Virus record (IMG/VR): IMGVR_UViG_3300037297_000066
Location: 62,001 to 126,000 of that record
Direction: 5' to 3' (one strand)
DNA length: 64,000 bases
Numbering within the stretch: the first letter of the stretch is position 1; every line of letters begins with the position of its first letter. The notes below the pieces were generated by a model. It worked only from the letters and a program-made list of their open reading frames with translations. It made no database searches and was not told where the DNA came from. The translations under genes and the position numbers were made by a program. Positions 2,817 to 54,240 of the stretch are shown here, in pieces.

Positions 2817-2820
2817 ACCA

Positions 2821-2852
2821 TTACTACACGTGAGGGGGTTGGATCTTAACCC
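2821..2852 (-). promoter_or_regulatory. Class A motif GGGTTAAGATC-N7-CTCACGTGTAGTA, copy 1
   Basis: One of four copies with identical spacing, each 4-5 nt before an ATG. Confidence 0.7.
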
Positions 2853-8334: not shown

Positions 8335-8998
8335 CTGAACCGTTTCGGAACCCGTTTAAGGCCACCTCTACTTCCTGATGGATGCTCTGAATGGTCCTAC
8401 GATTTCCGTTGAGGAGAACGGTTACCCTCCAAGGCATCGAATCAAGTGTCACATTCCCGGTCGTCACTCGAACAGCACTAGGACGCAAACACCTCAAGAA
8501 GTTGGTTGCCGCATTGTTCCAAGGGGTGCCCCACAGTTCTTGCAGCACAGGTAGACTGAACCACCCAAAAGAATGGTCTCGGGTTTCGTAATCAACCCCG
8601 TGACTAGAGATGTAAGAGTCGGCTACGTCGGTCGCCTCTCGTTGTGTTCTCAGAGCCGCTAGGTTCTCTGGAGAATCTCTTTCCGCAAGCTCTTCTGGAG
8701 TCCTCTCGTAGAAACGCAACCCTATCGGTTGCCGGACTTCATCCGCAGGCAATACCGTGAGCTCAGTCCGAACCGGAAGTTTGTTGAGGTCCGGAAGCTC
8801 TTCTTGCTTCGGACTTCCCTGTATGATGAGCCCTCCCCCCACCACTTGTTCTTTTGGGAACCGATCTAGGTGAATGAGGGTAGCCTCTTCCTCCATCTCT
8901 TCCAGTGAAGGATTTTCCGGACGAGGATTCACCTCTTCCCAGGCAGCTTCGATGGGTTCACGGCTGTCGTCAGTCATTGACTTCCCATCCTTCTCCAC
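8219..8998 (-). CDS. Hypothetical protein; C-terminal region weakly resembles I13/I78 protease-inhibitor fold
   Basis: VRVTTGNVTLDSMPWRVTVLLNG resembles the V.xG..VT.D....RV.V pattern; weak. Confidence 0.5.
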   Translation of the reverse strand: MEKDGKSMTDDSREPIEAAWEEVNPRPENPSLEEMEEEATLIHLDRFPKEQVVGGGLIIQGSPKQEELPDLNKLPVRTELTVLPADEVRQPIGLRFYERTPEELAERDSPENLAALRTQREATDVADSYISSHGVDYETRDHSFGWFSLPVLQELWGTPWNNAATNFLRCLRPSAVRVTTGNVTLDSMPWRVTVLLNGNRRTIQSIHQEVEVALNGFRNGSDAGSYILGRSRELESPQPQAAVNLRWVRNLSIHGEEYR

Positions 8999-15037: not shown

Positions 15038-16243
15038 ATGCGCAACATGCGAATGAGAATCAAGGGAGCGGATGGACGGTTCAAGACCGTTTACGAATCT
15101 CACTTCGATCCTAAAACGGGCAACCTTGTTCGCAGGGTTTGGGAACTTCGCAACAGGGATCGGTTCTCGTTAATCGAAGAGGATGAAGACCTGTGCACCC
15201 AGTTTCGCTCACAATTCCCTCACAGGCATAGGAGTTTTTGCTCCCCCTCCCCGGAGATGGTGGACATCTCCATCACGAACCAATGCAACTTCGAATGCCC
15301 TTACTGCTACCAGTGCAGCACCAAGGATGCTGAGCACGGGGAGCACAACCTGGTAGAGAAGGTGATCAAGGGATTCCAACACCCTCCCTACCAGATTGCC
15401 ATCGGGGGCGGAGAACCTACCCTCCACCCAGATCTGCCAGACATGTTGCGAACCGCCCGGCGACTCAAGGTAGTTCCCAACTACACGACCAATGGCAGCT
15501 TCATGACTAGAGAATTGGTCGAAGCCACCAACAAGTACTGTGGCGGGGTAGCCATGACCTACCACCCCCACAAGGGTATTGCCTGGTTTCGGAAGCACTA
15601 TCTCCGGCTGAAGAACAGTCTCACTTGCCAAGTCAACGTCCACCTCATTCTCAAGCGAGGAATTCTTCGAGATCTTCGAGCCTTGATGGGCCTCCAAAAA
15701 GAAGCGGGTCCCATCTCCCTGGTACTGCTCGCCTACGATCCCCAGGGACGAGGCACGATGAGCCAGCTTCCCAGTCGTAGCGACTTCAACGACCGGCTAC
15801 CCCAACTGCTGATCACTGCCCAAAACCAGGGAATGCGTGTCGCCTTCTCTGAGGGTCTCCTGCCTTACTTCCTCAGCCGCCCCCAAATCGCTGCCAACGC
15901 TGGACTAGGAACCCGGTCAGAGGGTCTGTTCAGCTGCTACGTCAACTCCCAGGGGCAGATGTTCGAAAGCAGCTTCGGGGCTGCTCCATGTGCAGGAGAC
16001 TTCCAAAAACCAACGGTTTTCGAGAATACTTCCCAAGAGCTCTGGGAGAATTTGTATGTGGGGTACAAACCTGACTTTCCTCCATGCTCTACCTGCAAAG
16101 GCAAAAGTCGGTGTGCACCTCGGGCGGTTACCTTTGGCTACCTGCTGTGTGCCCACTCAGAGATCCACAAGCTCCCTCATTGTGAACGCCCTGCCGAGGG
16201 AGTTAAGACCGCCTTCGAGAGACTTTTGGAGGAAGACGACTGA
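15038..16243 (+). CDS. Radical SAM protein with SPASM/twitch-like C-terminus and W-tag variant (KTAFERLL)
   Basis: CNFECPYC (CxxxCxxC), GGGEPTLHP, YTTNG, C-terminal Cys cluster (CSTC...C). Confidence 0.9.
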   Translation: MRNMRMRIKGADGRFKTVYESHFDPKTGNLVRRVWELRNRDRFSLIEEDEDLCTQFRSQFPHRHRSFCSPSPEMVDISITNQCNFECPYCYQCSTKDAEHGEHNLVEKVIKGFQHPPYQIAIGGGEPTLHPDLPDMLRTARRLKVVPNYTTNGSFMTRELVEATNKYCGGVAMTYHPHKGIAWFRKHYLRLKNSLTCQVNVHLILKRGILRDLRALMGLQKEAGPISLVLLAYDPQGRGTMSQLPSRSDFNDRLPQLLITAQNQGMRVAFSEGLLPYFLSRPQIAANAGLGTRSEGLFSCYVNSQGQMFESSFGAAPCAGDFQKPTVFENTSQELWENLYVGYKPDFPPCSTCKGKSRCAPRAVTFGYLLCAHSEIHKLPHCERPAEGVKTAFERLLEEDD

Positions 16244-28762: not shown

Positions 28763-29169
28763 TTGCCTACCTCCCCAATTGTGACCTTCACACCACTACA
28801 CACAGCAACACCCGACCGTTTGTTTACGTGATCTCAATCACGGACTGCGTAACCTGTCAGACCAATAGTTCCAGCTTCCAAATCCCTTTCATTGCCAATG
28901 CTGATAGGGGATCGTGCCCAGAAGACCTACCGTGGGGGGTACCGAGAAGTCGGGAAAAAGAGCGGCTCAAGCGGTTGGCTGAGTTGGCTGCTTGGACACA
29001 CCAGGCTATCGAGGAGTTTCGTAAGGCAGTACTCCAAAGTAGAGCACTCCCAACCGCTCCCATCCAAAAGCAGCCCAGGCCCGTAGAGCACAAGCACCTT
29101 CACGTTCGCAAGCTCAGCAAGCGACGAGTGTGCTCAGGGGCAAGTCGCTATCGAGTGATGGCCAACTAG
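28759..29169 (+). CDS. Hypothetical protein (start MIAYL)
   Basis: ATGA overlap with the upstream stop. Confidence 0.5.
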   Translation: MIAYLPNCDLHTTTHSNTRPFVYVISITDCVTCQTNSSSFQIPFIANADRGSCPEDLPWGVPRSREKERLKRLAELAAWTHQAIEEFRKAVLQSRALPTAPIQKQPRPVEHKHLHVRKLSKRRVCSGASRYRVMAN

Positions 29170-30407
29170 CGACTCTCTTCCCAAGAGTCGTGTAGAGCCG
29201 AGAAGATCATCCCCATCTGGGACCAATCTACGAGTCTCTGTCGGATGATCTTAGACATCGGAACAACTTCTACGTAGGTACGTTCCGAATCCCCCTCAAC
29301 CCCATGGGCACTTGAGTCCGATCGCAGCTGCTCCAACTGTTCGGGAGTCAACTCTGTCCGAAACAGGTTGCAATGGTAGGAGGCCCCTGTAGCGTTGATC
29401 TGCCTGGAACCCAAGGGCCGGACCTCGGTTACTGATAACCTGAGTCCCGTTTCCTCGAAAACCTCTTCTACGGCCACCTCTCTGGGGTCCTCATTGGGAT
29501 CCTTGGAGGAGCCCCCTGGAAGTTCGTAAACGAAACCCTCCTCGTTTCTGACAGAGCTCCGAAACTCTTTGACCAAAACCACCTCTGCTTCAGCCCCATA
29601 CCCGTACATCACAACGGCAGATATGTCCGGACGGAAGGAAACCACTTCGTTGGTCTTGTTGCGATCCTCGGCCTCGATGTGGACATTGACGTGGAGGACG
29701 TACGAGAACAACCCGCTCCTGGGCCTACCTTTGGCCGGCTCGAAGGTCCCTCTAGGGATTCGGAAGGTCCATTCGACCCGGCAACCATCGAGACGATTGC
29801 CTACAGCCTTCTGGGCGCTCAGCCACGCCTGGAAGTCGTTTCGATTCCAGATCTCCAAGGGTACCTCGCACTCCCCGCCCATCCTCAGAGCCCCCTCAGC
29901 GGTTCGGGAAAGGGCACATTGAAGGGTAGCCTCCAAAGCCTCCCTGATGGGCACCCCCAGATGGCGGGCCCACCACAGTTGGTAGCCCACTTTCTCGGCC
30001 TCGGGAGGAGCTCCGAAAACGCATTTCCCGGAGTGCTTCCAGGTGCCCCACTCATCATTCGTCGTCAGGGCCGCCATGGGCTGGGGGAAGAGCTTGCCCC
30101 CATAGATGTCCCGGGGGACCCAGAACACGATGCAGTCGCACCGGTTCATGGCCTCCTCTTCCCACTCGATCTGGGTATCGTAGTCAATCCCTGGATTTTT
30201 ATTCTCCCGGTACTCCGGATTGTAGACCACTCCATCGTAGCCTAGCCGCTCCAAGATCTCCAAAGCGGTGGTCCTCCAGGACTCCCCCTTTACTCGTGGA
30301 GACGGCCCGGCCAGGAAGATGGCTCGGGTAAAGGTCTCGGGAACAGGTTCTCCGGTGTAGACTACCTGCATGGCTTGACCCCTCTTCCAATGTCCGGCAT
30401 CGTGCAT
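29166..30407 (-). CDS. Nucleoside 2-deoxyribosyltransferase-like domain fused to a NUDIX hydrolase
   Basis: N-terminal IFLAGP...WR...YNPE...QIEWE...CDCIVFW...TTNDEWG; C-terminal NUDIX box GGSSKDPNEDPREVAVEEVFEETGL. Confidence 0.85.
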   Translation of the reverse strand: MHDAGHWKRGQAMQVVYTGEPVPETFTRAIFLAGPSPRVKGESWRTTALEILERLGYDGVVYNPEYRENKNPGIDYDTQIEWEEEAMNRCDCIVFWVPRDIYGGKLFPQPMAALTTNDEWGTWKHSGKCVFGAPPEAEKVGYQLWWARHLGVPIREALEATLQCALSRTAEGALRMGGECEVPLEIWNRNDFQAWLSAQKAVGNRLDGCRVEWTFRIPRGTFEPAKGRPRSGLFSYVLHVNVHIEAEDRNKTNEVVSFRPDISAVVMYGYGAEAEVVLVKEFRSSVRNEEGFVYELPGGSSKDPNEDPREVAVEEVFEETGLRLSVTEVRPLGSRQINATGASYHCNLFRTELTPEQLEQLRSDSSAHGVEGDSERTYVEVVPMSKIIRQRLVDWSQMGMIFSALHDSWEESR

Positions 30408-37435: not shown

Positions 37436-37642
37436 GGTGTACAGTAGGGGAGCGAAGCCATTTGCGAGAGGTTCAGTGGCAAGAGTTTCCTAGGGACCGC
37501 TCGAAAGTGTGTGTTCCTTGATAGTTAAACCCTGTTTCCTGCTGGTCAGAGTCTGGTGATATAGGGTCAGAAGACCAGAACTGGACAACCTATCGCAGAG
37601 TCCTGTCCAAAGGTCTGATCTGACACCCCCATTTAGGGGTGG
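37436..37642 (+). promoter_or_regulatory. CRISPR leader 1 with class B promoter motif
   Basis: Near-identical to 46955-47161; starts with GGTGTACAGT; abuts the first repeat. Confidence 0.8.
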
Positions 37643-39603
37643 GTCGAGGGAGGAAAATCCTCTCTCGGGAGTTCCAACCTCAGCATGCCTTAGCCGGCGA
37701 GGAAGACCAACACCAGGTCGAGGGAGGAAAATCCTCTCTCGGGAGTTCCAACTCGTCCCTGCCTCTCGTGAGTTGGGATGCACTGTGCGTCGAGGGAGGA
37801 AAATCCTCTCTCGGGAGTTCCAACGCACTAGCGTACGTGTCCTCGGTGGAGCAGGCGGAGGTCGAGGGAGGAAAATCCTCTCTCGGGAGTTCCAACACGA
37901 GGCTTCGGGCTCGCTGGTCCGGGCTGACGTTCGTCGAGGGAGGGTGATCCTCCCTCGGGAGTTCCAACACCGTTCCATCCCCCTGGTGAACCCAACACGG
38001 AACACGTCGAGGGAGAAAAATCCTCTCTCGGGAGTTCCAACGCACTCGTCCACTGCACCGATAGGGGGCTACCCGTATAGTCGAGGGAGGAAAATCCTCC
38101 CTCGGGAGTTCCAACGGCGAGGTCGAGGATCGCCCCCTGCACTACATCCGGGTCGAGGGAGGGGGATCCTCCCTCGGGAGTTCCAACGATGATCGAGATA
38201 TCCCGGGCCACCCTCAGACCAGCTGTCGAGGGAGGGGTTTCCTCCCTCGGGAGTTTCAAGCCACCATGGGTAGACGCGCCAAGCACGCAAGTCGAGGGAG
38301 GGGGATCCTCCCTCGGGAGTTCCAAGCACGTGCCCGGCACTGGCGACGATTCCCGCTTCGATGTCGAGGGAGGGCAATCCTCTCTCGGGAGTTCCAACAA
38401 TGCACCAGTCGTTGACGACGTTCGCTCCAGGTCGAGGGAGGGGGATCCTCCCTCGGGAGTTCCAACTCCTCCCAGCCCCTGAACTGGGCCTCCACTGCCT
38501 GCAGGTCGAGGGAGGGTCCTCCTCCCTCGGGAGTTCCAACCCGTCACCGCTCGGAGAGACGACCATCACCCAAAGGGTCGAGGGAGGGTGATCCTCCCTC
38601 GGGTGTTCCAAGTGGACGCTCCACCGAATCCACGCCACGAGCGAGTGAAGTCGAGGGAGGGGGATCCTCCCTCGGGAGTTCCAACTGCGGGATCTTTGAG
38701 AATGCGGGGGGTCTGTAGTCTGGTCGAGGGAGGGAAATCCTCTCTCGGGAGTTCCAACATCTCCATTCTTTCGGGTTTCGGATGTGAATCTCTTGGGTCG
38801 AGGGAGGGAAATCCTCTCTCGGGAGTTCCAACCTCACCTTGCGATGCCTGTCGGCCGTCACGAGGGCCATGTCGAGGGAGGGAAATCCTCTCTCGGGAGT
38901 TCCAAGATCTGGCTCTTCGCCCCGGACTTCCTGGTACTGAGCGGTCGAGGGAGGGTTTTCCTTCCTCGGGAGTTCCAAGCAGAAGCTCGTGGACGCTGCC
39001 GTGCCTGCCGATCCCGTGTCGAGGGAGGGGGATCCTCCCTCGGGAGTTTCAATCAGACGGATGACGGTCGCGAGGCCCAGTCGAGGGAGGGTCCTCCTCC
39101 CTCGGGAGTTCTAAGAATCGGACGCTAGGGCCATCGCCCCCATAGCCTGTCGAGGGAGGGGTTTCCTCCCTCGGGAGTTTCAAGCCGGATGATGAGGCGA
39201 GGCTCATCAGCGATGTCGAGGGAGGGAGATCCTCCCTCGGGAGTTTCAACCGATCCCACCACCTCTGAGCGAGGCCGATGGCCATGTCGAGGGAGGGGTT
39301 TCCTCTTTCAGGAGTTCCAAGGCCGGGCCCGACGATCGCTTCGTGCAGCCCGACGACGGGTCGAGGGAGGGAAATCCTCTCTCGGGAGTTCCAAGCGAGA
39401 ACAACCGCATGTGGGTACCTGCCGCACCAGGGGTCGAGGGAGGGTCCTCCTCCCTCGGGAGTTCTAACGGGAGTTCAAAATCCACGGCCGGACGTTGTGA
39501 ATCGGTTGTCTGGTGCGTCGAGGGAGGGTGATCCTCCCTCGGGAGTTTCAATCAAGGCTTTTCGCTAATCGAGAGGGATCATTTCCCTCTCGGGAGTTTC
39601 AAT
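37643..39603 (+). CRISPR. CRISPR array 1: about 28 repeats (27 plus 1 degenerate terminal), ~36 nt, unique spacers mostly ~35-38 nt
   Basis: Consensus GTCGAGGGAGG-N5-CCTC(C/T)CTCGGGAGTT(C/T)CAA(C/G); ~73 nt period; degenerate repeat at the right end defines the trailer. Confidence 0.97.
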
Positions 39604-39709: not shown

Positions 39710-40393
39710 ATGCCTACCCCCCCACTAAAACGAGTCTACGTCAGAGCCTGGGCTGAGCTGGGTTGTTGGAACACTCTTTCCCAGCAAGCCGAGCGCATCT
39801 CCAACATCGTACCCACTCATTCGGCCGTTCGAGGTTTTCTACGATCCATCCTTGGGAAATGGGAAACCGACTACCAGGTCCACGAATGTTGGTTGCTCCG
39901 GGAGCCGGAGTTGACCTCCCATGTCGTTAGCGAGGTCAACTTCAAGCCTACGGTCAACCCGCAAAAGCCCGTTCACATTGAAGGGGCTCGCATCATGCGC
40001 ACGAACACGTGCTTGAGAAACCCGGACTATATGTTCGTGTTCACCCCCATGCGTAGTTGGTGGGGAGACAAGGTCTTCCAAAAGGATCCCACCGAGACTC
40101 ACGAAAAGAACTGGAACATGTCAGTGAGGCGGTTGAAGCACGGTAAGCAACACCGACCGCCCTACTTTGGGATGAGCGACTACCCCGCCTCCTATGAATA
40201 CGTTGACAAGCCTCAACTCAAGCCTGTTCCTGTCAACCGAAACCTCGGCATCATGTACTGGGGGATCGACTACGCAGATCCTCAAGAACCCAGCTACTAC
40301 ACCGCCCTGAGCGTTGTGGACGGTGTAGTCCGTTACCCAACGGTAGAAGAAGTCCGGAAGAACGGCCTCAAATTGACGGATAGGCGATCATGA
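39710..40393 (+). CDS. cas5: Type I-C Cas5 (Cas5d/Cas5c)
   Basis: ERISNIVPTHSAVRGFLRSILGK, SEV, RTNTCLRNPDY, RRLKHG...PYFG, NLGIMYWGIDY, VVDGVVRYP match the Cas5c pattern. Confidence 0.9.
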   Translation: MPTPPLKRVYVRAWAELGCWNTLSQQAERISNIVPTHSAVRGFLRSILGKWETDYQVHECWLLREPELTSHVVSEVNFKPTVNPQKPVHIEGARIMRTNTCLRNPDYMFVFTPMRSWWGDKVFQKDPTETHEKNWNMSVRRLKHGKQHRPPYFGMSDYPASYEYVDKPQLKPVPVNRNLGIMYWGIDYADPQEPSYYTALSVVDGVVRYPTVEEVRKNGLKLTDRRS

Positions 40394-42246
40394 TCACAGC
40401 TCTCTACTCGTTTGGTAAGAACCGGGGGCTGGGATTCGATCCCTACTTCCCCCTGAAGCCCCACTACTACCTTCGACTATCTTCTTCGGGATCCGTGCGA
40501 ATCGAACCCATCAAGGAACCTGAGATCCGCCTCCCAGAGAAGTCCGGACGAAGCAGCAACATCGAGGCCAACTTCCTGTACGACACGGCCATGTACGCTC
40601 TGGCCTTCAACGCCATCCGCAAAGAGCGCTTGCTGACTCAGTTCCTGACTTTTTGGGGCAAGACCCTGGAACATCTGACCAACTGCGAAGACGTGGAAGC
40701 ACTGAAAGCCGTGAAGGCATTCTGCGACCAACTGGCCTTGTCAGAAATCTGCTCCGCCGTGAGTCAATGGGAAAAGAGCTCCAAGAAGCGGCTAGTGAGC
40801 CTTAAAGGCCCGAACCGTATCTCGGGTCTTGCTGAGATCCGGAAGGGACTCTCCGAGGTGGCTTTGGAGACCTTCGAAAGTCTAGCCAGTGGAAAACCCC
40901 CGGCCCCCATTCAAAAGGCCATAGGAGATCTGGCTATAGAAGGAGAGCAGTGGGTCATACTGACTTTGGAGGATGACAACACGCCCCTAGCGCTCAGGCC
41001 CAAGCCTTCTGAGCTGTGGGTTCAGCTCCAAAAGCCTACTGACGACAAGCCCACCAGCACCTGCTTGCTCACAGGGAAACCTTGTAAACCAGTCCGACTA
41101 CACCGGGCTCTCAAGGGTGTACCTGGTGGGGACAAAGGGATTCCTCTCATCTCGTTCGAGCAAGAAGTGACCCGCTACAAGGGCCGCAAGAAGGAAGACA
41201 ACTTCCCCATCAGTCGAGAAGCTCACGACACGTATGTAGCGGCCTTCCGGCACATTGTAGATCAGGGGAATGTCTTCGTGAGCATCAACTCCTGCCTCTT
41301 GGTATGGGTAGATGAGGCCGAGCATGACGAGCTCCTAACCCCCCTGCTGACGGTCCTACGATCCAAGGAAAAGGAGGAGGTCAAAGCAGCCTGGGACGAA
41401 GTAGAACGTCTAGACAGCGACGTCACGGTGCATCTGGCCATGCTTCGTAGCTCCAAGGGCCGCATCTCCATCCTAGGCTATCACACGCTTTCCGTGAATC
41501 AGTTGAGGGCCAACCTTCTCCGATTCCACGAAGAGTTCTCCGAGTTCCCAGAGTACACCCCAAGAGGGTTATTTTCCTGGATGCTCAAGAAGAACATCAA
41601 GGGCAAGGACAAGGAAACAGCCAAGCTCTACACCATGGTGACTTTGGCCGTAGTACTAGGGACTCCTTACCCGTTACAGATCTTCCCTAGCCTCATCCAG
41701 TGGATCAAGAACACGGACAGTGCCCTGGACTTGTTCTTGCATCTTACCTGGCTGCGAGCCTACGTCTGCAGGGACTACGGTATTAACCCGCCTCCTATCA
41801 AAAACCCCTTTCAAAAGGAGCCCCTCGTGTGCGAACCACGCATTGAAGAGAACGTCAACCTCAACGAAACCGACATCGGATACAACCTTGGAAGACTGGT
41901 CGCCTTAGACTGCCATCTGCGCAGAATGACCGGCATCAGTGTCAGTGAGATTTCCGAGGTACGTTCAGCCACCAACAACCCTCACATGTACATCAGCCGG
42001 AGCTACCGGATGCTCCCCACGCTGGAGAAGCTGGAGAAGAAGGGATGGGGGAAGCCTCTCAGGGAGATGCGTGAAGAGGTCAAGGCCAAACTTGCTCCTC
42101 TCGTGGCTACTCCCATTCGTCTAACTCTCCTTGAAGAGTCCAGCTTTCAGATGGCCTTCACGTACCAGAAGACCTACCTTCGCCGCTACAACGCTTGGAG
42201 GAAGCAGCAGTACAAGGCCGCCAAGGCTGCTGAGGAAGAGAACTGA
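40390..42246 (+). CDS. cas8c: Type I-C large subunit Cas8c (Csd1)
   Basis: RSSNIEANFLYD, CLLTGK...RLHRALKGV...LISFE...NFPIS, KGRISI, GYNLGRLVAL; ATGA-coupled to cas5. Confidence 0.88.
   Translation: MITALYSFGKNRGLGFDPYFPLKPHYYLRLSSSGSVRIEPIKEPEIRLPEKSGRSSNIEANFLYDTAMYALAFNAIRKERLLTQFLTFWGKTLEHLTNCEDVEALKAVKAFCDQLALSEICSAVSQWEKSSKKRLVSLKGPNRISGLAEIRKGLSEVALETFESLASGKPPAPIQKAIGDLAIEGEQWVILTLEDDNTPLALRPKPSELWVQLQKPTDDKPTSTCLLTGKPCKPVRLHRALKGVPGGDKGIPLISFEQEVTRYKGRKKEDNFPISREAHDTYVAAFRHIVDQGNVFVSINSCLLVWVDEAEHDELLTPLLTVLRSKEKEEVKAAWDEVERLDSDVTVHLAMLRSSKGRISILGYHTLSVNQLRANLLRFHEEFSEFPEYTPRGLFSWMLKKNIKGKDKETAKLYTMVTLAVVLGTPYPLQIFPSLIQWIKNTDSALDLFLHLTWLRAYVCRDYGINPPPIKNPFQKEPLVCEPRIEENVNLNETDIGYNLGRLVALDCHLRRMTGISVSEISEVRSATNNPHMYISRSYRMLPTLEKLEKKGWGKPLREMREEVKAKLAPLVATPIRLTLLEESSFQMAFTYQKTYLRRYNAWRKQQYKAAKAAEEEN
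41827..42246 (+). CDS. cas11: Putative internally translated Cas11c (139 aa)
   Basis: In-frame GTG with AAGGAG 6 nt upstream, shortly before the GYNLGRL helix. Confidence 0.55.
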   Translation: MCEPRIEENVNLNETDIGYNLGRLVALDCHLRRMTGISVSEISEVRSATNNPHMYISRSYRMLPTLEKLEKKGWGKPLREMREEVKAKLAPLVATPIRLTLLEESSFQMAFTYQKTYLRRYNAWRKQQYKAAKAAEEEN

Positions 42247-42378
42247 TCGTTCAGACAACGGAACGCAGACTTTTGCCGAAAAGTACCGCTACAAGGGTTG
42301 ATTAACCCTCAGGTACTTCAGGTATCAGGAGGTATCTCCTGGGAGTCATCTAGATCGAAATCAAAACAGGAGGGCCTC

Positions 42379-43386
42379 ATGGCTCATTCATCGTATCCAA
42401 AAAACAATGACACCAACGTTTCTATCGTCCCCAACCGAATGGAGATCGTGACTCTCACGGAATATCGGGACGGCACTCCCCAACTGGCGCCTGACGAAAA
42501 CGGCACTCGTCAGGATCCCTTCTCTGGTCAAGGCTTGATCACGGGAGTGGGTACCAAGCGCAAGATTCGGGACTTCGCAGCCCTGCTCGGCCAGTCTCTC
42601 TACGTGGCCCGTCGAGCCGTCTTGAGCCACGCCGTCAACGAAGCAGCTCAAGCCCTGGGGGTGGAAGCCGATGCCAACCAGGAGGAAGAAAGCCCTCCCA
42701 TCGACGAGGACAAGGAAACCGAGCCCGAGCCCAAGAGCAAGGGCAAGAGCAAGGGCAAGAGCAAGGCCAAGGGCAAGGCCAAGAAGGAAAAGAACAAGGA
42801 GCTCGATTACGAAGTTGCCCTGAAGGTCAGGGATGAACTGTGCCGACGGTACTGGGACATCCGGGCATTTGGGGCCGTTCTGTGCAGCCCCGTGAACATC
42901 CCCGTTCGAGGGCCTCTCCAAGTTGGGATGGCCAGGTCTGTGGATCCGATCAACCCCCTCACGCTCTCTATCACCCGGGTCGCTGTGGCTACGGACCGAG
43001 AAGCGGAGGAGCAGAAAGGGCGCAACCACACGATGGGCACCCAGACGGTCGTTCCCTACGGGGTCTACCAGCAACACCACTACTACAACCCCCACGACGC
43101 CGAGGTCACGGGCTTCTCCCAGGAAGACTTTGAGATCTACCTCAGGGCTCTCAGGGAGATGCATGACCACACCAGGTCATGCATGCGGACTGAGGTGGTT
43201 CCTAGGAAGATCGTCATCTTCCGGCACAGCTGCCCTTTGGGCAACGCTCCCAGCCACAAGCTGTTCGAGTTGGTCAAGTTGACCAAGAAGCCGGGGGTTC
43301 CTACCCCCACCTGTTGGGAGGACTACGAGTTCAGCGTGGACGTAGAAAATCTACCTGAAGGGGTGGAAATCGAAGTCATCGGCTGA
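42379..43386 (+). CDS. cas7: Type I-C Cas7 (Csd2)
   Basis: ITGVGTKRKIRD, YWDIRAFGAV, VRGPLQV, SITRVAV, TMG...VPYGVY, TGFSQED, LGNAPSHKLF; GGAGG RBS before ATG 42379. Confidence 0.92.
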   Translation: MAHSSYPKNNDTNVSIVPNRMEIVTLTEYRDGTPQLAPDENGTRQDPFSGQGLITGVGTKRKIRDFAALLGQSLYVARRAVLSHAVNEAAQALGVEADANQEEESPPIDEDKETEPEPKSKGKSKGKSKAKGKAKKEKNKELDYEVALKVRDELCRRYWDIRAFGAVLCSPVNIPVRGPLQVGMARSVDPINPLTLSITRVAVATDREAEEQKGRNHTMGTQTVVPYGVYQQHHYYNPHDAEVTGFSQEDFEIYLRALREMHDHTRSCMRTEVVPRKIVIFRHSCPLGNAPSHKLFELVKLTKKPGVPTPTCWEDYEFSVDVENLPEGVEIEVIG

Positions 43387-43395
43387 CCCCGTGGT

Positions 43396-43433
43396 GTATG
43401 GTGGGAGAGACGAGAAAGCCTCTCCCACCATAC
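43396..43433. other. Perfect 14-bp inverted repeat between cas7 and the helicase
   Basis: GTATGGTGGGAGAG-N10-CTCTCCCACCATAC; no U-tract. Confidence 0.85.
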
Positions 43434-43445
43434 CAGGTCCTAGAA

Positions 43446-45470
43446 ATGCCTAGAAGAATCACTCTCCACAACTTCCAGAGCAGAGACGCTAACCGCCTCT
43501 GCCCTCGGTTCGTTGACCACAAGGTCTTCGCTATCATCTACGCTACTGGAGCAGGCAAGACCTTGGAGATAAGGGCCATCGTTTCTAGGCTGTACCACCA
43601 CCGATACGATCCTGAATACAAGGGGTTCAGTTTCACTCACTGTATTTTTGCGGCCCCCCAACGAGTCATCCGAGACAACTTCATTGAGGACATCTCCGAA
43701 CTGGTGGACGGAAACCTAGTCTACCCCTGTCTCAATGTCGTCACCAACGTAAGTCGAGAGGACCTGGAAAGGTTCCTGGGGCAACGCTGGACCGTAGACC
43801 GTATGTGTATGGCGGTCACCCACAGTATCATCGTAAGGCTGATCCCATGGTTGGAAGAGGCCCTGCGTCAAGACCCTAGCTTTCTCGTGGGAAAAATCCT
43901 GGTTATAGACGAAGCTCACCACATTCCGGCCAAGAGGCTGGCCCAACTGTGTCGGTTATGGAAAGACCACGGTGGACATCTGGTACTCCTGACCGCCACC
44001 CCCAGCCATCCTGACATCGAAAAAGTCATCCCTGACAATGCCATCGTAGCTTGCAGAACTCTGCCGGAGCAGATGGAAGGCGGAAAGTACGCCCCCCAGA
44101 TCCTTGAGACCGGTATCATCAACGTCACCGGAGAGGGGTACTCGGACAAGGAGATGTGTGGGATCCCCGTAGACGCAGACACCGCCATTCAGGAGATTGT
44201 AGACGACTACGAAAAGCAATGCCTGGAAGCCAAATGCAAGCCTCGGGCCCTGGTAATCATCCGACCTCGTAAGACCAGAGAAGAGAACCGGAAGATCATT
44301 GAGCGCTTCCTAGAGTGCTTTGAAGCGAAGGGGGACCTGAACGGTCTCGGGAAGATCCGGCCCGTAGTTGGAGTAGGGGCACACAAGTCGGTTATAGGGG
44401 ATGTGTCTGACTGCATCGCTCACGACAAAGCGATTCATTCAGGGGAGCAATGCACCTGCTCGAAGTGCCGAGGGCTCCCGTACCGGAGACTGACCTTCAA
44501 AGACTCCAACTACGATGTCCTGATTCTGATTGGCCGAGGACGAGAAGGGCTGGATACCGTTCTAGCCAGTCACATGTACCTGTTCGGCCTATGCCACTTC
44601 TTGCCTTCGGTGGGGCAGCTTCTGGGACGCATTATGCGTTGGCGTAAAGAGGTTCTCGACTACCCTGACAAGTGGCGGAACAGATCCTACCTCCGCATCA
44701 TCACGGCCGGAGTCAAAAATCTGGCAGCCCACAGTCAGCAGGTACTGTTGACTATGCACTACCTCAACCTCCTAGGCTTGCAACAGTGGAGTGTCCTGAG
44801 CCTAGTCAGCCGAATTGTTGACAAGATGGCTTCAAAGGCAGGCCACCCTCGACTCGGTGGAAAGCGTATTCCCTACATCACCTTGGAGAAGCGAGCCGCC
44901 ATTCTCACCTACCATAGTGAGATGATGAAGTGGTACAACGAAGGCTCTTCTCAGAATGAGCGAAATCACGGGGCCCCCCTCAACAAAGTACTGACTCGTA
45001 ATGAGCAGGCTAAGCTCACACTCAGTAGGATAGAGTTGGGTTGCCTCAGGCTAAAAGGAGCCCCTAAGGACAAGATCACCGAAGCAGAGATCCTCTTGGT
45101 CCTCACTGACCTTGAAGCCTCCTTCCACCGTGAGCAAAAAGAGGCCCTCCAAAGAGAGTTGTGGAAAGCCTTGGAAGAGCTGTTGCCCGAGGAAGGGGTG
45201 ATGAGTGCCGTCAACAGAGCTCTGGTTCAAGTGGCCTCCTCATTCCGAGAAGCCACTCTAAGCTACTCCCTGCTTGCCAGCCGGGTTCAACAGGAAATCC
45301 TGAGCTTGACTACTGAGCATATTGAAGACTTCTCAGCCCGCTTGGACGAGGCCCTCAAGAACAGCACGGCTCAAGCAGAAAAGAAACTGGAGACCCGCTA
45401 CGGGTACTCCCCCGGAACCTTGGAGACGTTCCGAAGAACCATAGCCAACCACCCGCCGGGTGTAAGATGA
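43446..45470 (+). CDS. SF2 DEAH helicase, restriction-enzyme/RadD-like rather than Cas3; no HD domain
   Basis: YATGAGKT ~30 aa from the start, IDEAHH, LTATP, GREGLD, QLLGRIMR; Cys-rich insert CTCSKC. The alternative start 43398 lies inside the hairpin. Confidence 0.85.
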   Translation: MPRRITLHNFQSRDANRLCPRFVDHKVFAIIYATGAGKTLEIRAIVSRLYHHRYDPEYKGFSFTHCIFAAPQRVIRDNFIEDISELVDGNLVYPCLNVVTNVSREDLERFLGQRWTVDRMCMAVTHSIIVRLIPWLEEALRQDPSFLVGKILVIDEAHHIPAKRLAQLCRLWKDHGGHLVLLTATPSHPDIEKVIPDNAIVACRTLPEQMEGGKYAPQILETGIINVTGEGYSDKEMCGIPVDADTAIQEIVDDYEKQCLEAKCKPRALVIIRPRKTREENRKIIERFLECFEAKGDLNGLGKIRPVVGVGAHKSVIGDVSDCIAHDKAIHSGEQCTCSKCRGLPYRRLTFKDSNYDVLILIGRGREGLDTVLASHMYLFGLCHFLPSVGQLLGRIMRWRKEVLDYPDKWRNRSYLRIITAGVKNLAAHSQQVLLTMHYLNLLGLQQWSVLSLVSRIVDKMASKAGHPRLGGKRIPYITLEKRAAILTYHSEMMKWYNEGSSQNERNHGAPLNKVLTRNEQAKLTLSRIELGCLRLKGAPKDKITEAEILLVLTDLEASFHREQKEALQRELWKALEELLPEEGVMSAVNRALVQVASSFREATLSYSLLASRVQQEILSLTTEHIEDFSARLDEALKNSTAQAEKKLETRYGYSPGTLETFRRTIANHPPGVR

Positions 45471-46183
45471 ACCTTGTAAAATTCAACAAACAGCCCTGGA
45501 GGTTGCGAACCTTTCAGAGCATGCGTAGTGAAAGCAGATTGTGGGATGGGTTTAAGCTGCGAGGGATCTACGCAGAGATGACAGCTCTTTCTGGCCACGA
45601 AATGTACCTCATCCTAAAAGAACACAAGGCTCTTGAAAAGCCTTACTACTTCGTAGGCTCTGATCTCAATGTGAAAGTCTACGTAGAACTCAGGGAAGAC
45701 AAGGAACGTGGGAAAATCCCGTGGACGGTAGCCTTCGGGGACATCATTCAAGTAGTCCAACAGATCATCCACAACAAGGATGGCCTCCCTGTTGCCGTTC
45801 TGAACATGGATGGGTTTGATCAGGTAGGGGGAAGCAAGTGGTGGAGTGAGACGGCCTCCCCCCTCGTAGAGATTGTCGAGGATTCCGTCAGGCGTCTAGG
45901 CAGTTTCATGTTGATTCTCAACAAGACCCTCGACACCCGAACCAAGAGTGATCCACTAGAGGCTTTGAGAACCCAGACGGCCCTCCTTTGCAAGGTCTTC
46001 GGCAAACGTTGGCCCTTGAGTCATAGCGACATCGTAACAGACATCCCCCCAGAAGTAGCCAACCGCAGCTTCGTAGGAGACGTGGGCGCCTTCCAGATCT
46101 ACAAGAGCAAAGGACGCCAGCTTCGAATGGCTACCTTGAGACTGGCTTTTCAACCCAGAAGAATTGTGGCCAAGCTTAGCTAG
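45467..46183 (+). CDS. Hypothetical, possible class I SAM-dependent methyltransferase-like fold
   Basis: Strand order YAEMTALSG / FVGSDLN / AFGDI / VLNMDGF mirrors motifs I-IV; ATGA-coupled to the helicase. Confidence 0.5.
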   Translation: MNLVKFNKQPWRLRTFQSMRSESRLWDGFKLRGIYAEMTALSGHEMYLILKEHKALEKPYYFVGSDLNVKVYVELREDKERGKIPWTVAFGDIIQVVQQIIHNKDGLPVAVLNMDGFDQVGGSKWWSETASPLVEIVEDSVRRLGSFMLILNKTLDTRTKSDPLEALRTQTALLCKVFGKRWPLSHSDIVTDIPPEVANRSFVGDVGAFQIYKSKGRQLRMATLRLAFQPRRIVAKLS

Positions 46184-46211
46184 TAACCCAACCCATAACC
46201 AGAGGAATCCG

Positions 46212-46421
46212 ATGTCCAAATCCAAAGACAGCTTCAACTCCGACGTCGTTCTCACGTTCGCCCAAAAGGCCAAGCGCTTCACGACTCAAGGTGTAGCAGG
46301 ACGCTTCAAGGTCCCCAAGCAGAGGGCCGCAGCGTGTATCGCCATCCTTCGTATCAAGGAAGTGGTCGAGTCCGACGGCAAGACCAGAGACGGCGACAGC
46401 AAGTGGGTCTACTGCGGGTAA
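46212..46421 (+). CDS. Small winged-helix DNA-binding-like protein
   Basis: AGAGGA RBS; FTTQGVAGRFKVPKQRAAACIAILRIKEVV plus a C-terminal beta hairpin. Confidence 0.55.
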   Translation: MSKSKDSFNSDVVLTFAQKAKRFTTQGVAGRFKVPKQRAAACIAILRIKEVVESDGKTRDGDSKWVYCG

Positions 46422-46714
46422 TTAGGCTCCACCATCGAAAACCTGTCCCGATCTTGATGGGGCATGACGCCCAAAAGGCGTTCCCAAGCTGTACGGGGAA
46501 CCTCTGGCTTCTTAGGTAAAGGCGTAGGAGCCGGAGGGAGCCCCGCTGATAGCCTTTTGTTCCGGTGGTACTCGTTGTCCACCCAGGACACGAAACGCCT
46601 TAGGGAGGGCTCCAGACGGTGTTCTCGGAGCTTTTCTCGGGCTTCGAACAAGAGACAGACGATGTCCTTCTGTTCTCGAAGGGTCAGTTGGCTAAACATG
46701 TAGGATAACGACAT
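46409..46714 (-). CDS. Hypothetical with W-tag (RTAWERLL)
   Basis: GTG-TAGGTA-N5-ATG start. Confidence 0.6.
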   Translation of the reverse strand: MSLSYMFSQLTLREQKDIVCLLFEAREKLREHRLEPSLRRFVSWVDNEYHRNKRLSAGLPPAPTPLPKKPEVPRTAWERLLGVMPHQDRDRFSMVEPNYPQ

Positions 46715-46954: not shown

Positions 46955-47161
46955 GGTGTACAGTAGGGGAGCGAAGCCATTTGCGAGAGGTTCAGTGCTA
47001 CCCGTAGCCTAGGGACCGCTCGAAAGTGTGTGTTCCTTGATAGTTAAACCCTGTTTCCTGCTGGTCAGAGCCTGGTGATACAGGGTCAGAAGATCAGAGC
47101 TGGACAACCTATCGCAGAGTTCTGTCCAAAGGTCTGATCTGACACCCCTATTTAGGGGTGA
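46955..47161 (+). promoter_or_regulatory. CRISPR leader 2 (duplicate of leader 1)
   Basis: Same sequence apart from one 11-nt block and about 7 scattered substitutions. Confidence 0.8.
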
Positions 47162-49116
47162 GTCGAGGGAGGGCAATCCTCTCTCGGGAGTTTCAACGAG
47201 CGACAACATCGTGCGGACCGTCGCCAGCTGCAACGTCGAGGGAGGGGGATCCTCCCTCGGGAGTTTCAACCGGGGCAGCTACCTTCCTTTCGAGCGGTAC
47301 ACGTTGGGTCGAGGGAGGGGATCCTCCCTCGGGAGTTTCAACGTAGCTCACGTAGGCGTTCTCGGAATCGCCGGTACCTCGTCGAGGGAGGGTCCTCCTC
47401 CCTCGGGAGTTCCAAGCAGCTACTCGACGCTTTGGGCAAGCCGAATGACATCAAGTCGAGGGAGGAAAATCTTCCCTCGGGAGTTCCAAGGAGCTCGGGT
47501 CCAGGTGACTCAGACTGGTACATCTGGGTCGAGGGAGGGGATCCTCCCTCGGGAGTTCCAAGTAGGTAGTGCTCGACTGGCGTGGTCATTCGGCCTCTAC
47601 GTCGAGGGAGGGGATCCTCCCTCGGGAGTTCCAAGTGGACCACCTCGGGTGGCAGTCGCCCCGATACTAGGGTCGAGGGAGGAAAATCTTCCCTCGGGAG
47701 TTCCAAGAGATCGTCGGACATCACACCACCTCCAGCAGCTGCGAGGTCGAGGGAGGAAAATCTTCCCTCGGGAGTTCCAAGGAACGAAACTGACGGATAC
47801 TCAGCCAGCGCGTTAACGGTCGAGGGAGGGGGATCCTCCCTCGGGTGTTTCAACGAAGGACGGACACAGCAAGCCACGGACAGAGGTCGAGGGAAGGAAA
47901 TCCTCCCTCGGGAGTTCCAACTGACCCGCCTTTCGGGCAAGAGCCGCCTGGCTCGTCGAGGGAGGGTGATCCTCCCTCGGGAGTTTCAACCCGAACGCGG
48001 TAGTGGCAGCCGTGCCCCACCCCACGTCGAGGGAGGGTCCTCCTCCCTCGGGAGTTCCAACACCATATCGAAGGGAGCAGAAGCCATGAAGCAGAGTCGA
48101 GGGAGGAAAATCTTCCCTCGGGAGTTCCAAGGTACGCGAGCCTCGCGACGGTTCTGACCACAGGTGTCGAGGGAGGAAAATCTTCCCTCGGGAGTTCCAA
48201 GTCGGGGTAACGCCGTTGGCCTTGCGGCGAGTCGAGGGAGGGGTTTCCTCCCTCGGGAGTTCCAAGAGTTTGCTCAGCCGGGGTGGGTGCGTCGGAGTGC
48301 GTAGTCGAGGGAGGGGTTTCCTCCCTCGGGAGTTCCAAGATCAGCGTTCAGCGCCCATGAGATTTGATCGTGATGAGTCGAGGGAGGGTCCTCCTCCCTC
48401 GGGAGTTCCAAGTCGGGACCAGTGCCCCAGACCGCGCTGAAGTTGATGTCGAGGGAGGAAAATCTTCCCTCGGGAGTTCCAAGAGAAGCCTCGTCCCCCT
48501 TCTCCCTTTCTTCTTCCAGCGTCGAGGGAGGGGGATCCTCCCTCGGGAGTTTCAACTAAAGACCGCCGCGTCTTCCAGTTCCGCCACGAGCGGTCGAGGT
48601 AGGGGGATCCTCCCTCGGGAGTTTCAAGTTGTACACGGTGGTCGTCCCCACCTTGAGGGCACGGTCGAGGGAGGAAAATCTTCCCTCGGGAGTTCCAAGG
48701 AGGACTACCAGGCGAGGCAGGCCAAGGACGTGTTCAAGGTCGAGGGAGGGGGATCCTCCCTCGGGAGTTCCAAGACGCCCGGACCTGACGAGCCCGTAGT
48801 CCCTCCAGAAGTCGAGGGAGGGAAATACTCCCTCGGGAGTTCCAAGAGCGCCCTGATGCGTCTGGATGAAAGCTTCGCTGCCGTCGAGGGAGGAAAATCC
48901 TCCCTCGGGAGTTCCAAGAGGACGGACGACGGACGCCATTCTGTCGCTTGCTTCTTGTCGAGGGAGGGTCCTCCTCCCTCGGGAGTTCCAAGAGCTAGTC
49001 ATCCCACGGGCGTTCCGTTCGACTCGAAGTCGAGGGAGGGGGATCCTCCCTCGGGAGTTCCAAGAATGTCAGGAAGCAGTGTCGAGGGAGGGAGATCCTT
49101 CCTCGGGAATTTCAAT
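47162..49116 (+). CRISPR. CRISPR array 2: about 28 repeats, same repeat family as array 1
   Basis: Counted by eye; last spacer is only ~16 nt and the last repeat is degenerate (GAATTTCAAT). Confidence 0.97.
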
Positions 49117-53003: not shown

Positions 53004-53411
53004 TTGATTCCCAAAGTCGGCTCCTGGTGGCGAACCAAGAGCGCCCAGTGGCCCAGTACGGCTTTTTTACTCACAGGCTTCAGGGACGTCTTCCACGAGG
53101 TGGTTTCCATCACTGAAGAGGACGTCTGCCTGATCCAAAACGGAGCGGACCGGCCCTACTTCATCCCCAAAGACGAATTCGACCAAGGAAAGTTCAAGCC
53201 TTTCCGGCCCCGAGGCTCAATACCTTCGTGGGTGAGACCGGGGGTCCTTTTTCGTAGACCCCGGGGAAAAACCTGGACAGTCACGACGGTTCGAGGAAGG
53301 TTCTTCACCGCCGAGATCAGGTACGGCACCTTTCGGTTCTTCAGTCCTGACGAGATTTCGAACTTACGGCCGTACCTGACGTGGCACGAGCGACTTCTAT
53401 CTACAGATTGA
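53004..53411 (+). CDS. Hypothetical with W-tag variant (LTWHERLL)
   Basis: Two SH3-like repeats; tag. Confidence 0.6.
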   Translation: MIPKVGSWWRTKSAQWPSTAFLLTGFRDVFHEVVSITEEDVCLIQNGADRPYFIPKDEFDQGKFKPFRPRGSIPSWVRPGVLFRRPRGKTWTVTTVRGRFFTAEIRYGTFRFFSPDEISNLRPYLTWHERLLSTD

Positions 53412-54240
53412 GGAACTGCGAGCTTCCCTCGTTCGGCCGAGCGTGGAGATAGCGGCTAGTAGTCGCCACGTTGGCGTGCCCGAGGGTTGCTTGCACGAGG
53501 TGTATGGGGGCCCCGTTGTCCAGGGCATGGCTAGCATGAGCGTGACGCAGCCAGTGAGGGGAAGCCTTCTCGCCGATGGCATCAGCGGTCTCGTAGATGA
53601 TCTGCCGAGCTTCTCGGACACACAGAGGGTTGCCTCGCCGGCTCTTGAACACGAGGCTATGGTCGGTGTCGTTCTTCCAACGAAGTTTTCGGAGCTCGTT
53701 GACGAACTGGGCAGAGAGCTTGACGGTTCGGGTCTTACCGCCCTTCCCGTGGAAGGTGACCCTGTCGATGCTCAGGTCCGCCCATGTAAGGTTCACGGTT
53801 TCGGTGATACGGGATCCCGCCGCATATAGCAGCTTGATGAGCAGGTAGTTGCGGCCAGGCTCTGCTGCGGCCAGCAATCCCTGAACGGTTTCCTCGTTCA
53901 GGATTCTCTCGTGGAGAGTGTCTCTCACTGAGGGGGCCTTCAGGATGAGGGCCACGTTGAACACCGTGTAGCCGGTCTGGTGAGCGTACTTCATGAGGCT
54001 CTTGACCGAGCGGATCCGGCGGGCCTTCGTCGCTGGGGAGCCCACCAGGGATTCAGCATAGCGAACCACGTGGTCCACCTTGGCTTCCTGAAGACCTACA
54101 TTCTCCGACTCTAGGAACTCCAAGAACATCTGGGCATCCCGGGAGTACGCTATGGCTGTATTTTCAGGACGACCCGACAGCCAAAGTTGAACCAAATGCT
54201 TGTCGGAAGTAGCGCCGGAGTAGTTTTCAGGAAGCCGCAT
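53401..54240 (-). CDS. Tyrosine recombinase, XerC/XerD-like
   Basis: GSRITE (R), GKGGK (K), PHWLRHAHASH, LGHANVATTSRY (HxxR, H, Y). Confidence 0.95.
   Translation of the reverse strand: MRLPENYSGATSDKHLVQLWLSGRPENTAIAYSRDAQMFLEFLESENVGLQEAKVDHVVRYAESLVGSPATKARRIRSVKSLMKYAHQTGYTVFNVALILKAPSVRDTLHERILNEETVQGLLAAAEPGRNYLLIKLLYAAGSRITETVNLTWADLSIDRVTFHGKGGKTRTVKLSAQFVNELRKLRWKNDTDHSLVFKSRRGNPLCVREARQIIYETADAIGEKASPHWLRHAHASHALDNGAPIHLVQATLGHANVATTSRYLHARPNEGSSQFLNL

Follow-up and report, generated by a model that had tools for sequence, protein, structure and literature searches.

A conserved protein with a predicted methyltransferase fold is encoded beside the helicase of a phage CRISPR system

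We found that, in a huge-phage CRISPR system with no DNA-cutting Cas3, the gene following the helicase encodes a conserved protein predicted to have a methyltransferase fold, which is itself followed by a small predicted winged-helix protein, and this system may therefore act on its targets without cutting them. The window analysed was the 64,000-nucleotide stretch at positions 62,001 to 126,000 of IMG/VR record IMGVR_UViG_3300037297_000066 (a 437 kb UViG), and all features below are on the plus strand. An earlier note, made from the sequence alone, had placed a methyltransferase-like ORF and a winged-helix-like ORF at 45467-46421, coupled to a CRISPR-adjacent helicase, and our analysis confirmed this observation, including its range. 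The first ORF (45467-46183, 238 aa, pI 9.7) starts at an ATG overlapping the TGA of the 690-aa helicase ORF (ATGA at 45467-45470), while the second (46212-46421, 69 aa, pI 9.9) is preceded by GAGGAA. Both are real genes and not chance ORFs, as an exhaustive HMMER search found a family of 87 representative homologues of matching length for the 238-aa protein, 10 homologue clusters were found for the 69-aa protein, and both gave confident structural models.

The two ORFs lie at the end of an operon flanked by two CRISPR arrays. The first gene is cas5 (39710-40393, 227 aa, Cas5d/Cas5c-like; PF09704, 7e-09; PADLOC Cas5c, 6.5e-23), followed by cas8c/csd1 (40390-42246, 618 aa; PF09709, 2e-50) and a Csd2-like cas7 (42298-43386; PF05107, 1.5e-59; TIGR02589, 1e-66). 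The start of cas7 is uncertain (TTG at 42298, ATG at 42379, or ATG at 42439 as in the JGI call), and the protein carries a charged Lys/Gly/Ser-rich insertion at about residues 128-168. Only Cas7 passed its NCBIfam cut-off, while Cas5 and Cas8c scored below theirs. Array 1 (37643-39551) contains 27 repeats of about 35-36 nt (GTCGAGGGAGG-loop-TCCTCCCTCGGGAGTTCCAA) with spacers of 27-49 nt and a degenerate terminal copy near 39568-39602, and array 2 (47162-49115) contains 28 repeats of the same family. The leader of array 1 (37436-37642) belongs to a 243-nt direct repeat that is 93% identical to 46955-47197, i.e. the leader of array 2 (46955-47161) plus its first repeat, so that one leader is a duplicate of the other. 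No protospacer was found in the window or in the related loci examined, two spacer seeds matched only the window's own contig in IMG/VR, and the repeat pattern was found nowhere else in the genome or viral collections, giving no clue to the host. A promoter and terminator scan remained at background level.

The helicase (43398-45470) occupies the position of Cas3 and is an SF2 helicase/translocase with Walker A (TGAGKT), DEAH, TATP and QxxGRxxR motifs, which were invariant in 7 lineages. ResIII was its best Pfam hit, with DEAD also matched, and its closest solved relative in a PDB profile search was the type I restriction-modification HsdR motor 3h1t (4.5e-10), with LlaGI and LlaBIII also appearing and no Cas3 among the 60 matches listed. 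A single marginal PADLOC Cas3e hit was observed (E 0.0098 over about 40 residues). The protein has no HD region, its motor motifs start at about residue 50, leaving no room for an N-terminal nuclease, and nothing is invariant after residue 426. No nuclease domain was recognised, although this rests on sequence only. Precomputed Pfam hits on the called genes showed no Cas3, Cas1, Cas2 or Cas4 within 10 kb on either side of the operon.

Sequence searches did not place either small protein in a known family. Pfam, NCBIfam, PHROGs, PADLOC and phmmer searches of PDB sequences gave nothing for either ORF, and a word-indexed homologue search found only the 238-aa protein itself. Pfam run on all 68 aligned members of its family gave no methyltransferase hit, a profile of the family against PDB sequences gave only spurious coiled-coil hits, and hhalign against a canonical methyltransferase encoded in one of the related loci (L020, below) showed no relation. 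Locus scans with a back-translated pattern from a 5-sequence alignment found only the window's own contig among viral contigs, nothing in genomes and 2 loci in metagenomes, while tblastn against GenBank phages and PLSDB plasmids returned no match.

In contrast, the AlphaFold2 model of the 238-aa protein (pLDDT 94.5, pTM 0.91) is a class I SAM-methyltransferase fold with the order β1-αA-β2-αB-β3-αC-β4-αD-β5-αE-β6-β7, a seven-stranded sheet in which β7 is antiparallel and forms a hairpin with β6. A reading of this ORF as an HD, Cas3'' or nuclease protein was rejected because of this fold. The top 50 Foldseek PDB hits were SAM methyltransferases or close kin such as spermidine synthase (E about 1e-5; 255 hits had E <= 0.001), and VIA re-alignment gave Z 10.4-11.9 over 159-188 residues (METTL16, Trm1, spermidine synthase, MtfA). 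A search independent of Foldseek over 48,161 chains gave only class I methyltransferases and their kin in its top 50 (Z 10.1-11.6), while a BFVD fold search gave only generic methyltransferase folds (TM <= 0.54). These matches are generic (Z about 11, about 10% identity) and do not point to a substrate class. The top neighbours include RNA methyltransferases (METTL16, Trm1, TrmK, Trm5, RlmO), protein and small-molecule methyltransferases, and spermidine or spermine synthases, all at the same Z, which leaves a remote possibility that the enzyme modifies something other than the target, such as the crRNA or pre-crRNA, a Cas protein or the helicase (by protein methylation), or a small molecule or polyamine (by aminopropyl transfer, as in spermidine synthase). 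Nothing specific speaks against this reading; the basic pI (family median 9.1) and the conserved K8, R12, R220, R225 and W125/W126 favour a nucleic-acid substrate but do not say which one.

The four motifs listed in the earlier note were all present, with YAEMTALSG at 35-43, FVGSDLN at 62-68, FGDI at 90-93 and VLNMDGF at 111-117, and in the model they lie at the C-terminal ends of strands β1 (34-38), β2 (62-66), β3 (87-90) and β4 (109-119). Across the 68 aligned members, with a mean column identity of only 22%, E37 was observed in 62 (plus 4 with Asp), G40 in 66, S/T42 in 60, G43 in 59, an acidic residue (D or E) at position 66 in 68, D92 in 54 (plus 9 with Asn and 3 with Glu), N113 in 50, D115 in 68 and N152 in 66. 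The window's protein has D66 and G91-D92, but Ala at position 40, the best-conserved motif I glycine. The earlier note had called the glycine-rich motif I degenerate and suggested that the protein may be inactive or only bind SAM; the Gly-poor motif is peculiar to this copy, as the family keeps E-h-h-G-x-S/T-G, the same length as the canonical E/DxGxGxG with the glycines shifted, and the acidic β2 residue, the β3 Asp and the post-β4 Asp are all kept, and an inactive protein is therefore less likely than was feared. Motif IV is N113-h-D115-[T/G]-[T/Y], with no prolines, and not the (D/N/S)PP(Y/F/W) of DNA or RNA amino-methyltransferases (N6-A, N4-C, N2-G).

The absence of a canonical motif IV, the shifted motif I, the lack of any Pfam methyltransferase hit and the G40A change in the window's copy could instead indicate a pseudoenzyme or adaptor, in which the fold is kept as a scaffold, perhaps still binding SAM as a sensor, and couples the motor to Cascade or regulates its ATPase, with interference by a roadblock of Cascade plus helicase, as in type IV-A with DinG, and no methyl transfer. 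The gene overlap with the helicase, which suggests a stoichiometric partner, is also in keeping with this. However, all four cofactor-contact positions are kept at 80-100% and an invariant Asp sits exactly at the catalytic post-β4 position, the pattern expected of an active enzyme, whereas pseudo-methyltransferases usually lose these residues, and we consider this reading unlikely. A complex prediction of the helicase, SAM and the 238-aa protein, in which ligands are not scored, gave a score of 0.00, neither for nor against binding.

The 69-aa protein modeled as a winged helix (pLDDT 89.5), with helices at 10-20, 25-32 and 36-48 and strands at 22-24, 52-57 and 63-67, i.e. the α1-β1-α2-α3-β2-β3 topology with a β-hairpin wing. 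Foldseek gave TM about 0.7 and rmsd 1.7-2.2 Å to MarR-type regulators, the FtsK gamma domain, Zα and ribosomal S25e, but all E-values were above 0.001. The protein is conserved next to the methyltransferase-fold gene in several lineages.

Genomic contexts were sampled for only about 10 of the 87 representatives. The order cas5-cas8c-cas7-helicase-methyltransferase fold was observed in the window and in the related loci designated L005, L006-L009, L012, L017/L018 and L019, while a further contig (P0037) showed cas8c-cas7-helicase-methyltransferase fold with its cas5 cut off by the contig end. An array is usually present in these seven lineages, following the operon in L006, L012 and L017/L018. 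An eighth, short contig (L010) holds the helicase-methyltransferase fold pair with only a weak Cas7-like fragment upstream. Among the six lineages compared, the four proteins were only 24-47% identical (methyltransferase fold 24-38%); these distances are saturated, and identity correlations between the methyltransferase-fold protein and Cas proteins were uninformative. The flanking ORFs of the window were not conserved in the other loci. The earlier note had named a structure that is not Rossmann-like, or homologues never near cas genes, as grounds for refutation, and neither was found.

One further lineage (L020-L022) carries a homologous helicase (hhalign probability 99.9%, E 1.8e-36) and a methyltransferase-fold protein (30% identity) with no Cascade genes or array within 10 kb upstream and 4.5 kb downstream, and the most distant member (P0090) sits among IS elements with no recognisable cas gene. 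The pair therefore does not need Cascade and is the core unit, and Cascade may be a later or optional partner. Together with the restriction-enzyme motor as the helicase's nearest solved relative, this raises the possibility of an autonomous phage module with restriction-modification-like or anti-defence logic, independent of crRNA, which could for example methylate the phage's own DNA or an RNA and would merely be co-located, or loosely co-regulated, with Cas3-less Cascade operons. We consider this improbable, since in the seven lineages above, which have diverged to about 25-38% identity where compared, the pair sits between cas7 and the array (where present), where cas3 would be, with no other interference gene, and since a bare catalytic core of 238 aa needs a partner for target choice.

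The explanation we favor, as somewhat more likely than not, is that ORF 45467-46183 encodes a signature subunit of a phage-borne CRISPR-Cas system derived from type I-C. In this view, the Cas3 nuclease-helicase is replaced by two genes that are always adjacent and usually overlap, an HsdR-like SF2 ATPase and a bare class I SAM-methyltransferase-fold protein, with a small winged-helix protein often added. Cas5, Cas8c and Cas7 with crRNA would form Cascade and open an R-loop on a DNA target, as established for type I-C, and the motor would be recruited there in place of Cas3, as inferred from its position in the operon. The methyltransferase-fold protein, which has no target-recognition domain of its own, is proposed to work as the motor's partner and to use SAM to methylate the exposed or translocated target nucleic acid, leading to marking or silencing and not cutting. 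Our analysis establishes the predicted fold, the conservation of the cofactor-site positions, the strict synteny with the helicase, the frequent synteny with Cascade and CRISPR arrays and, from sequence, the absence of any recognisable nuclease domain, whereas SAM binding, methyl transfer, the substrate and physical contact with the helicase or Cascade remain inferences. The earlier note's interpretation was thus partly supported: the methyltransferase and winged-helix folds and the linkage to cas genes held, while its speculation that, with Cascade and the helicase, these proteins form an RNA-guided DNA/RNA modification or silencing module instead of a nuclease was not shown.

Known class 1 CRISPR systems act through nucleases, signalling, transposases or a helicase roadblock. 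The replacement of Cas3 by a restriction-type motor plus a methyltransferase-fold protein with an intact-looking cofactor site raises the possibility of naturally programmable nucleic-acid methylation, or at least of a new non-cutting mode of interference used by huge phages against hosts or rival elements. In its boldest form, which is doubtful but not excluded, this would be a natural RNA-guided methyltransferase system in which Cascade directs the translocase and the bare methyltransferase to crRNA-specified DNA, which is methylated as a mark or for silencing instead of being cut, a CRISPR effector chemistry not described so far and carried by huge phages. If the protein is active, a compact RNA-guided methyltransferase would also be of interest as a tool. 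The analysis also defines two unannotated protein families as candidate cas-associated genes (87 representatives for the methyltransferase-fold protein and about 10 clusters for the winged-helix protein).

The closest known system is the type I-C variant of huge phages reported in 2020 (Al-Shayeb et al. 2020, PMC7162821), which shares the Cas5d-like, Cas8c and Cas7 proteins, the lack of Cas1 and Cas2 and an unidentified SF2 helicase in place of Cas3, on a very large phage contig. We found no report of the methyltransferase-fold subunit, and the text of that paper that we could read, its figures excepted, mentions neither a methyltransferase-fold nor a winged-helix gene, whereas here the two genes are shown to be conserved parts of the operon across many more lineages than the two phages reported, turning the unexplained helicase into part of a testable six-gene system. 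Canonical type I-C (Cas3-Cas5c-Cas8c-Cas7-Cas4-Cas1-Cas2) shares the Cascade genes and a repeat formed by a hairpin followed by an 11-nt tail, with related loci keeping the ATTGAAAC tail, but here the interference genes are replaced, with no HD-nuclease Cas3 and no adaptation genes within 10 kb. Type IV-A (Csf complex plus DinG) is likewise a class 1 effector complex on a mobile element with a helicase instead of a nuclease and no adaptation module, and is the precedent for interference without cleavage (PMC11519345), but its effector proteins are Csf and not I-C Cascade, its helicase is a different kind of SF2 (DinG, not HsdR-like), and it has no methyltransferase-fold partner. Type I, type ISP and type III restriction-modification enzymes also pair an SF2 translocase with a SAM-methyltransferase fold, but in our system there is no PD-(D/E)xK nuclease region and no HsdS or target-recognition domain, and the methyltransferase-fold protein lacks the NPPF/DPPY motif and matches no N6/N4 methyltransferase profile. 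Finally, class I SAM-dependent methyltransferases (e.g. Trm1 3axt, METTL16 9u48, MtfA 3g2p) share the predicted seven-strand Rossmann-like fold with a β6-β7 hairpin, acidic or Gly residues at the motif I, II and III positions and an invariant Asp after β4, while our family shows no closest subfamily, a motif I shifted by one residue, a non-canonical motif IV, and its own conserved residues in the N-terminal helix (K8, W11, R12, N15) and a WW pair at the start of αD.

The plus strand of 39710-46421 was found to hold six tightly packed genes, comprising cas5 (39710-40393), cas8c (40390-42246), cas7 (42298-43386), a 690-aa SF2 helicase (43398-45470), a 238-aa ORF (45467-46183) and a 69-aa ORF (46212-46421). 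The ATG of the 238-aa ORF overlaps the TGA of the helicase, giving ATGA at 45467-45470, and the 69-aa ORF has a GAGGAA ribosome-binding site. The earlier note had placed a methyltransferase-like ORF and a winged-helix protein behind the helicase, and its coordinates and the four motifs it picked out were found to be correct. Cas7 carries a highly charged low-complexity insertion (about 42680-42800), in which an acidic stretch is followed by KSKGKSKGKSKAKGKAKKEK, encoded by 12-nt tandem repeats, and a shorter Lys-rich stretch lies in Cas8c (41586-41625). On the minus strand, a 101-aa ORF (46409-46714) converges on the 69-aa gene and overlaps its end by 13 nt. This ORF is called as a gene by JGI, but it matches no family and is not conserved in the related loci.

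Two CRISPR arrays flank the operon, with 27 repeats at 37643-39551 and 28 repeats at 47162-49115. Each is preceded by a copy of the same leader of about 200 nt, within a 243-nt direct repeat (37436-37678 and 46955-47197, 93% identical) that consists of the leader plus the first repeat, and both arrays face the same way as the cas genes. Repeats within a single array differ in the loop and upper stem of the hairpin (for example GGAGG-AAAA-TCCTCTC, GGAGGG-GGA-TCCTCCC and GGAGGG-TCC-TCCTCCC), while the changes preserve the stem and the 3' tail is constant. The same pattern was observed in the arrays of a distant lineage (loci L017:9368-10290 and L018:7716-8640). This much repeat heterogeneity is unusual and may reflect arrays that are maintained without Cas1 and Cas2.

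The same genes lie on a 437-kb contig, JGI 3300037297, which is also IMG/VR UViG_3300037297_000066. The surrounding genes are small and mostly unknown, and include a 568-aa protein with a peptidoglycan transglycosylase domain (8970-10676, minus strand), a radical-SAM protein (15038-16243, plus strand), a fusion of a nucleoside 2-deoxyribosyltransferase-like domain and NUDIX (29166-30407, minus strand) and a tyrosine recombinase (53401-54240, minus strand). This content fits a huge phage.

Searches of the 238-aa protein against sequence libraries (Pfam, NCBIfam, PHROGs, PADLOC and PDB sequences) returned nothing, and a word-based homologue search found only the protein itself. An exhaustive HMMER search over 1.84 billion representatives found 87 proteins at E <= 1e-3 and 41 at E <= 1e-10, nearly all of which are 200-276 aa long. 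Using a 68-sequence alignment of this family, AlphaFold2 gave a model with pLDDT 94.5 and pTM 0.91, in which the order of elements is β1(34-38)-α-β2(62-66)-α-β3(87-90)-α-β4(109-119)-α-β5(147-154)-α-β6(209-213)-β7(220-229). The structure searches with this model agreed with one another. The 50 Foldseek PDB hits listed are SAM-dependent methyltransferases or close kin such as spermidine synthase (E about 1e-5, with 255 hits at E <= 0.001), and VIA re-alignment gave Z 10.4-11.9 over 159-188 residues. An independent scan of 48,161 representative chains placed only class I methyltransferases and their kin (spermidine or spermine synthase) in the top 50, with Trm1 first at Z 11.6 and 188 residues aligned. 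The fold assignment is therefore solid, although no subfamily stands out, identity is about 10%, and the matches leave the substrate class open. A substrate other than the target, such as crRNA, a protein or a small molecule, is thus one of the rival explanations.

We next examined whether the cofactor site is kept. The four motifs picked out in the earlier note lie exactly at the C-terminal ends of β1-β4, which is where class I methyltransferases place the SAM-contacting and catalytic residues. Among the 68 aligned members, the motif I positions are E37 in 62 (plus 4 with Asp), G40 in 66, S/T42 in 60 and G43 in 59. Position 66 at the end of β2 is D or E in all 68, and D92 after β3 is found in 54, with an additional 9 Asn and 3 Glu. 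N113 in motif IV is found in 50, D115 after β4 is invariant in the 68, and N152 in β5 is found in 66. The mean column identity of this alignment is 22%. Also conserved are W125/W126, D156, G207, Y212, R220, M221 and R225, as well as K8, W11, R12 and N15 in the N-terminal helix. The window's copy keeps all of these except G40, which is Ala. The family is basic, with a median pI of 9.1 and 9.7 for the window copy. We read this as a probably active, SAM-using, nucleic-acid-directed enzyme, a reading that is inferred from sequence and model alone. Motif IV is not the (D/N)PP(Y/F/W) of amino-methyltransferases, and at 238 aa the protein is a bare catalytic core with no separate target-recognition domain. 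A rival possibility is a pseudoenzyme or SAM-sensing adaptor in a roadblock system like type IV-A.

The family of the 69-aa protein has about 10 clusters, and its conserved core reads KRFTT...AAA.VAILRIK...DGK..DGTS.W. The model (pLDDT 89.5) has the winged-helix order α1-β1-α2-α3-β2-β3. Foldseek gave TM about 0.7 and rmsd about 2 Å to MarR-type regulators, the FtsK gamma domain, Zα and S25e, with no E-value below 0.001, which is not unusual for so small a domain. The position of the gene varies by lineage. It follows the methyltransferase-fold gene directly in the window and in loci L005, L017/L018 and L019, lies beyond the array in L012, and was not found in the L006 lineage.

Gene neighbourhoods were compared across ten lineages carrying the methyltransferase-fold family. 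The order cas5-cas8c-cas7-helicase-methyltransferase fold was observed in the window (L001), with its two arrays, and in L005, L006-L009, L012, L017/L018 and L019, with an array downstream in L006-L009, L012 and L017/L018. A seventh lineage, the contig of family member P0037, shows cas8c-cas7-helicase-methyltransferase fold, with cas5 cut off by the contig end. The eighth, L010, is a short contig with helicase-methyltransferase fold and only a weak Cas7-like fragment upstream. Two further short contigs, those of P0071 and P0077, were uninformative. Among the six lineages compared, Cas8c, Cas7, the helicase and the methyltransferase-fold protein are each only 24-47% identical, with the methyltransferase-fold protein at 24-38%, and the arrangement is therefore old. 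The window's flanking ORFs are not shared with the other loci. In L017 a canonical N6/N4 DNA methyltransferase gene (908-2032) lies two genes upstream of cas5, while in L019 a cluster of tRNA-like repeats (2640-3030) lies just upstream of cas5.

The remaining two lineages lack recognisable cas genes in the regions examined. In L020-L022 (L020:7572-10696) the 810-aa helicase is homologous (hhalign probability 99.9%, E 1.8e-36), and the methyltransferase-fold protein is 30% identical to the window's and overlaps the helicase gene by 4 nt. No cas5, cas7 or cas8 gene and no array lie within 10 kb upstream or 4.5 kb downstream, and the neighbours are NAD-salvage genes (NAMPT, an NMNAT-like gene and a NUDIX-NrtR-like gene) and purA. 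This pair may be the ancestral, free-standing form of the module. In the tenth lineage, the 28-kb contig of P0090 (ENA ERZ25039489), the most distant member of the methyltransferase-fold family (E 8.5e-4) follows a 371-aa ORF with a 4-nt overlap, in a region rich in IS elements and with no recognisable cas gene, and may be a decayed or very divergent version of the module. The invariant unit is therefore the helicase-methyltransferase pair, and Cascade is its usual partner but not an obligatory one. An autonomous phage helicase-methyltransferase module that is only co-located with Cascade is accordingly a further rival.

Within the helicase, Walker A, DEAH, TATP and QxxGRxxR are invariant in seven lineages. 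The motor motifs begin near residue 50, so there is no N-terminal HD or PD-(D/E)xK domain, and nothing is invariant after residue 426. The best solved relative of the family profile is a type I restriction HsdR motor (3h1t, 4.5e-10), followed by generic SF2 proteins and the type ISP enzymes LlaGI and LlaBIII, and no Cas3 appears among the 60 matches shown.

In the best-supported reading, Cascade would find the target, the HsdR-like motor would take the place of Cas3, and its obligate partner, a bare SAM-methyltransferase, would act on the exposed nucleic acid, with an outcome other than cleavage. A complex prediction gave no verdict and counts for nothing either way. The predicted fold and the linkage of the genes are what our analysis shows, while SAM binding, methyl transfer and any action on an RNA-guided target are inferred. 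The observation made in the earlier note is confirmed. Its interpretation is partly supported, in that both fold calls are right, while its idea of an RNA-guided modification or silencing module in place of a nuclease remains an inference. The two conditions it had named as refuting, a structure that is not Rossmann-like and homologues that are never near cas genes, were both examined, and neither was observed.

A motor of this kind next to a methyltransferase fold recalls restriction-modification enzymes that have lost the nuclease and the specificity subunit, and Cascade could supply the specificity, although this is an analogy and not a membership. The system as such, a Cas3-less I-C variant of huge phages with a helicase protein instead of Cas3, is already known (Al-Shayeb et al. 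2020, PMC7162821). A methyltransferase-like or winged-helix gene is not mentioned in the text of that paper, in the 2023 survey of rare systems (PMC10910872) or in the 2025 classification (PMC12669027), a comparison that leaves aside a 2022 Cell paper on virus-encoded CRISPR systems. Relative to the known I-C variant, what appears to be new is the recognition of a conserved subunit with a predicted methyltransferase fold, and of a predicted winged-helix companion, as part of it, together with the helicase-methyltransferase pair as the core module.
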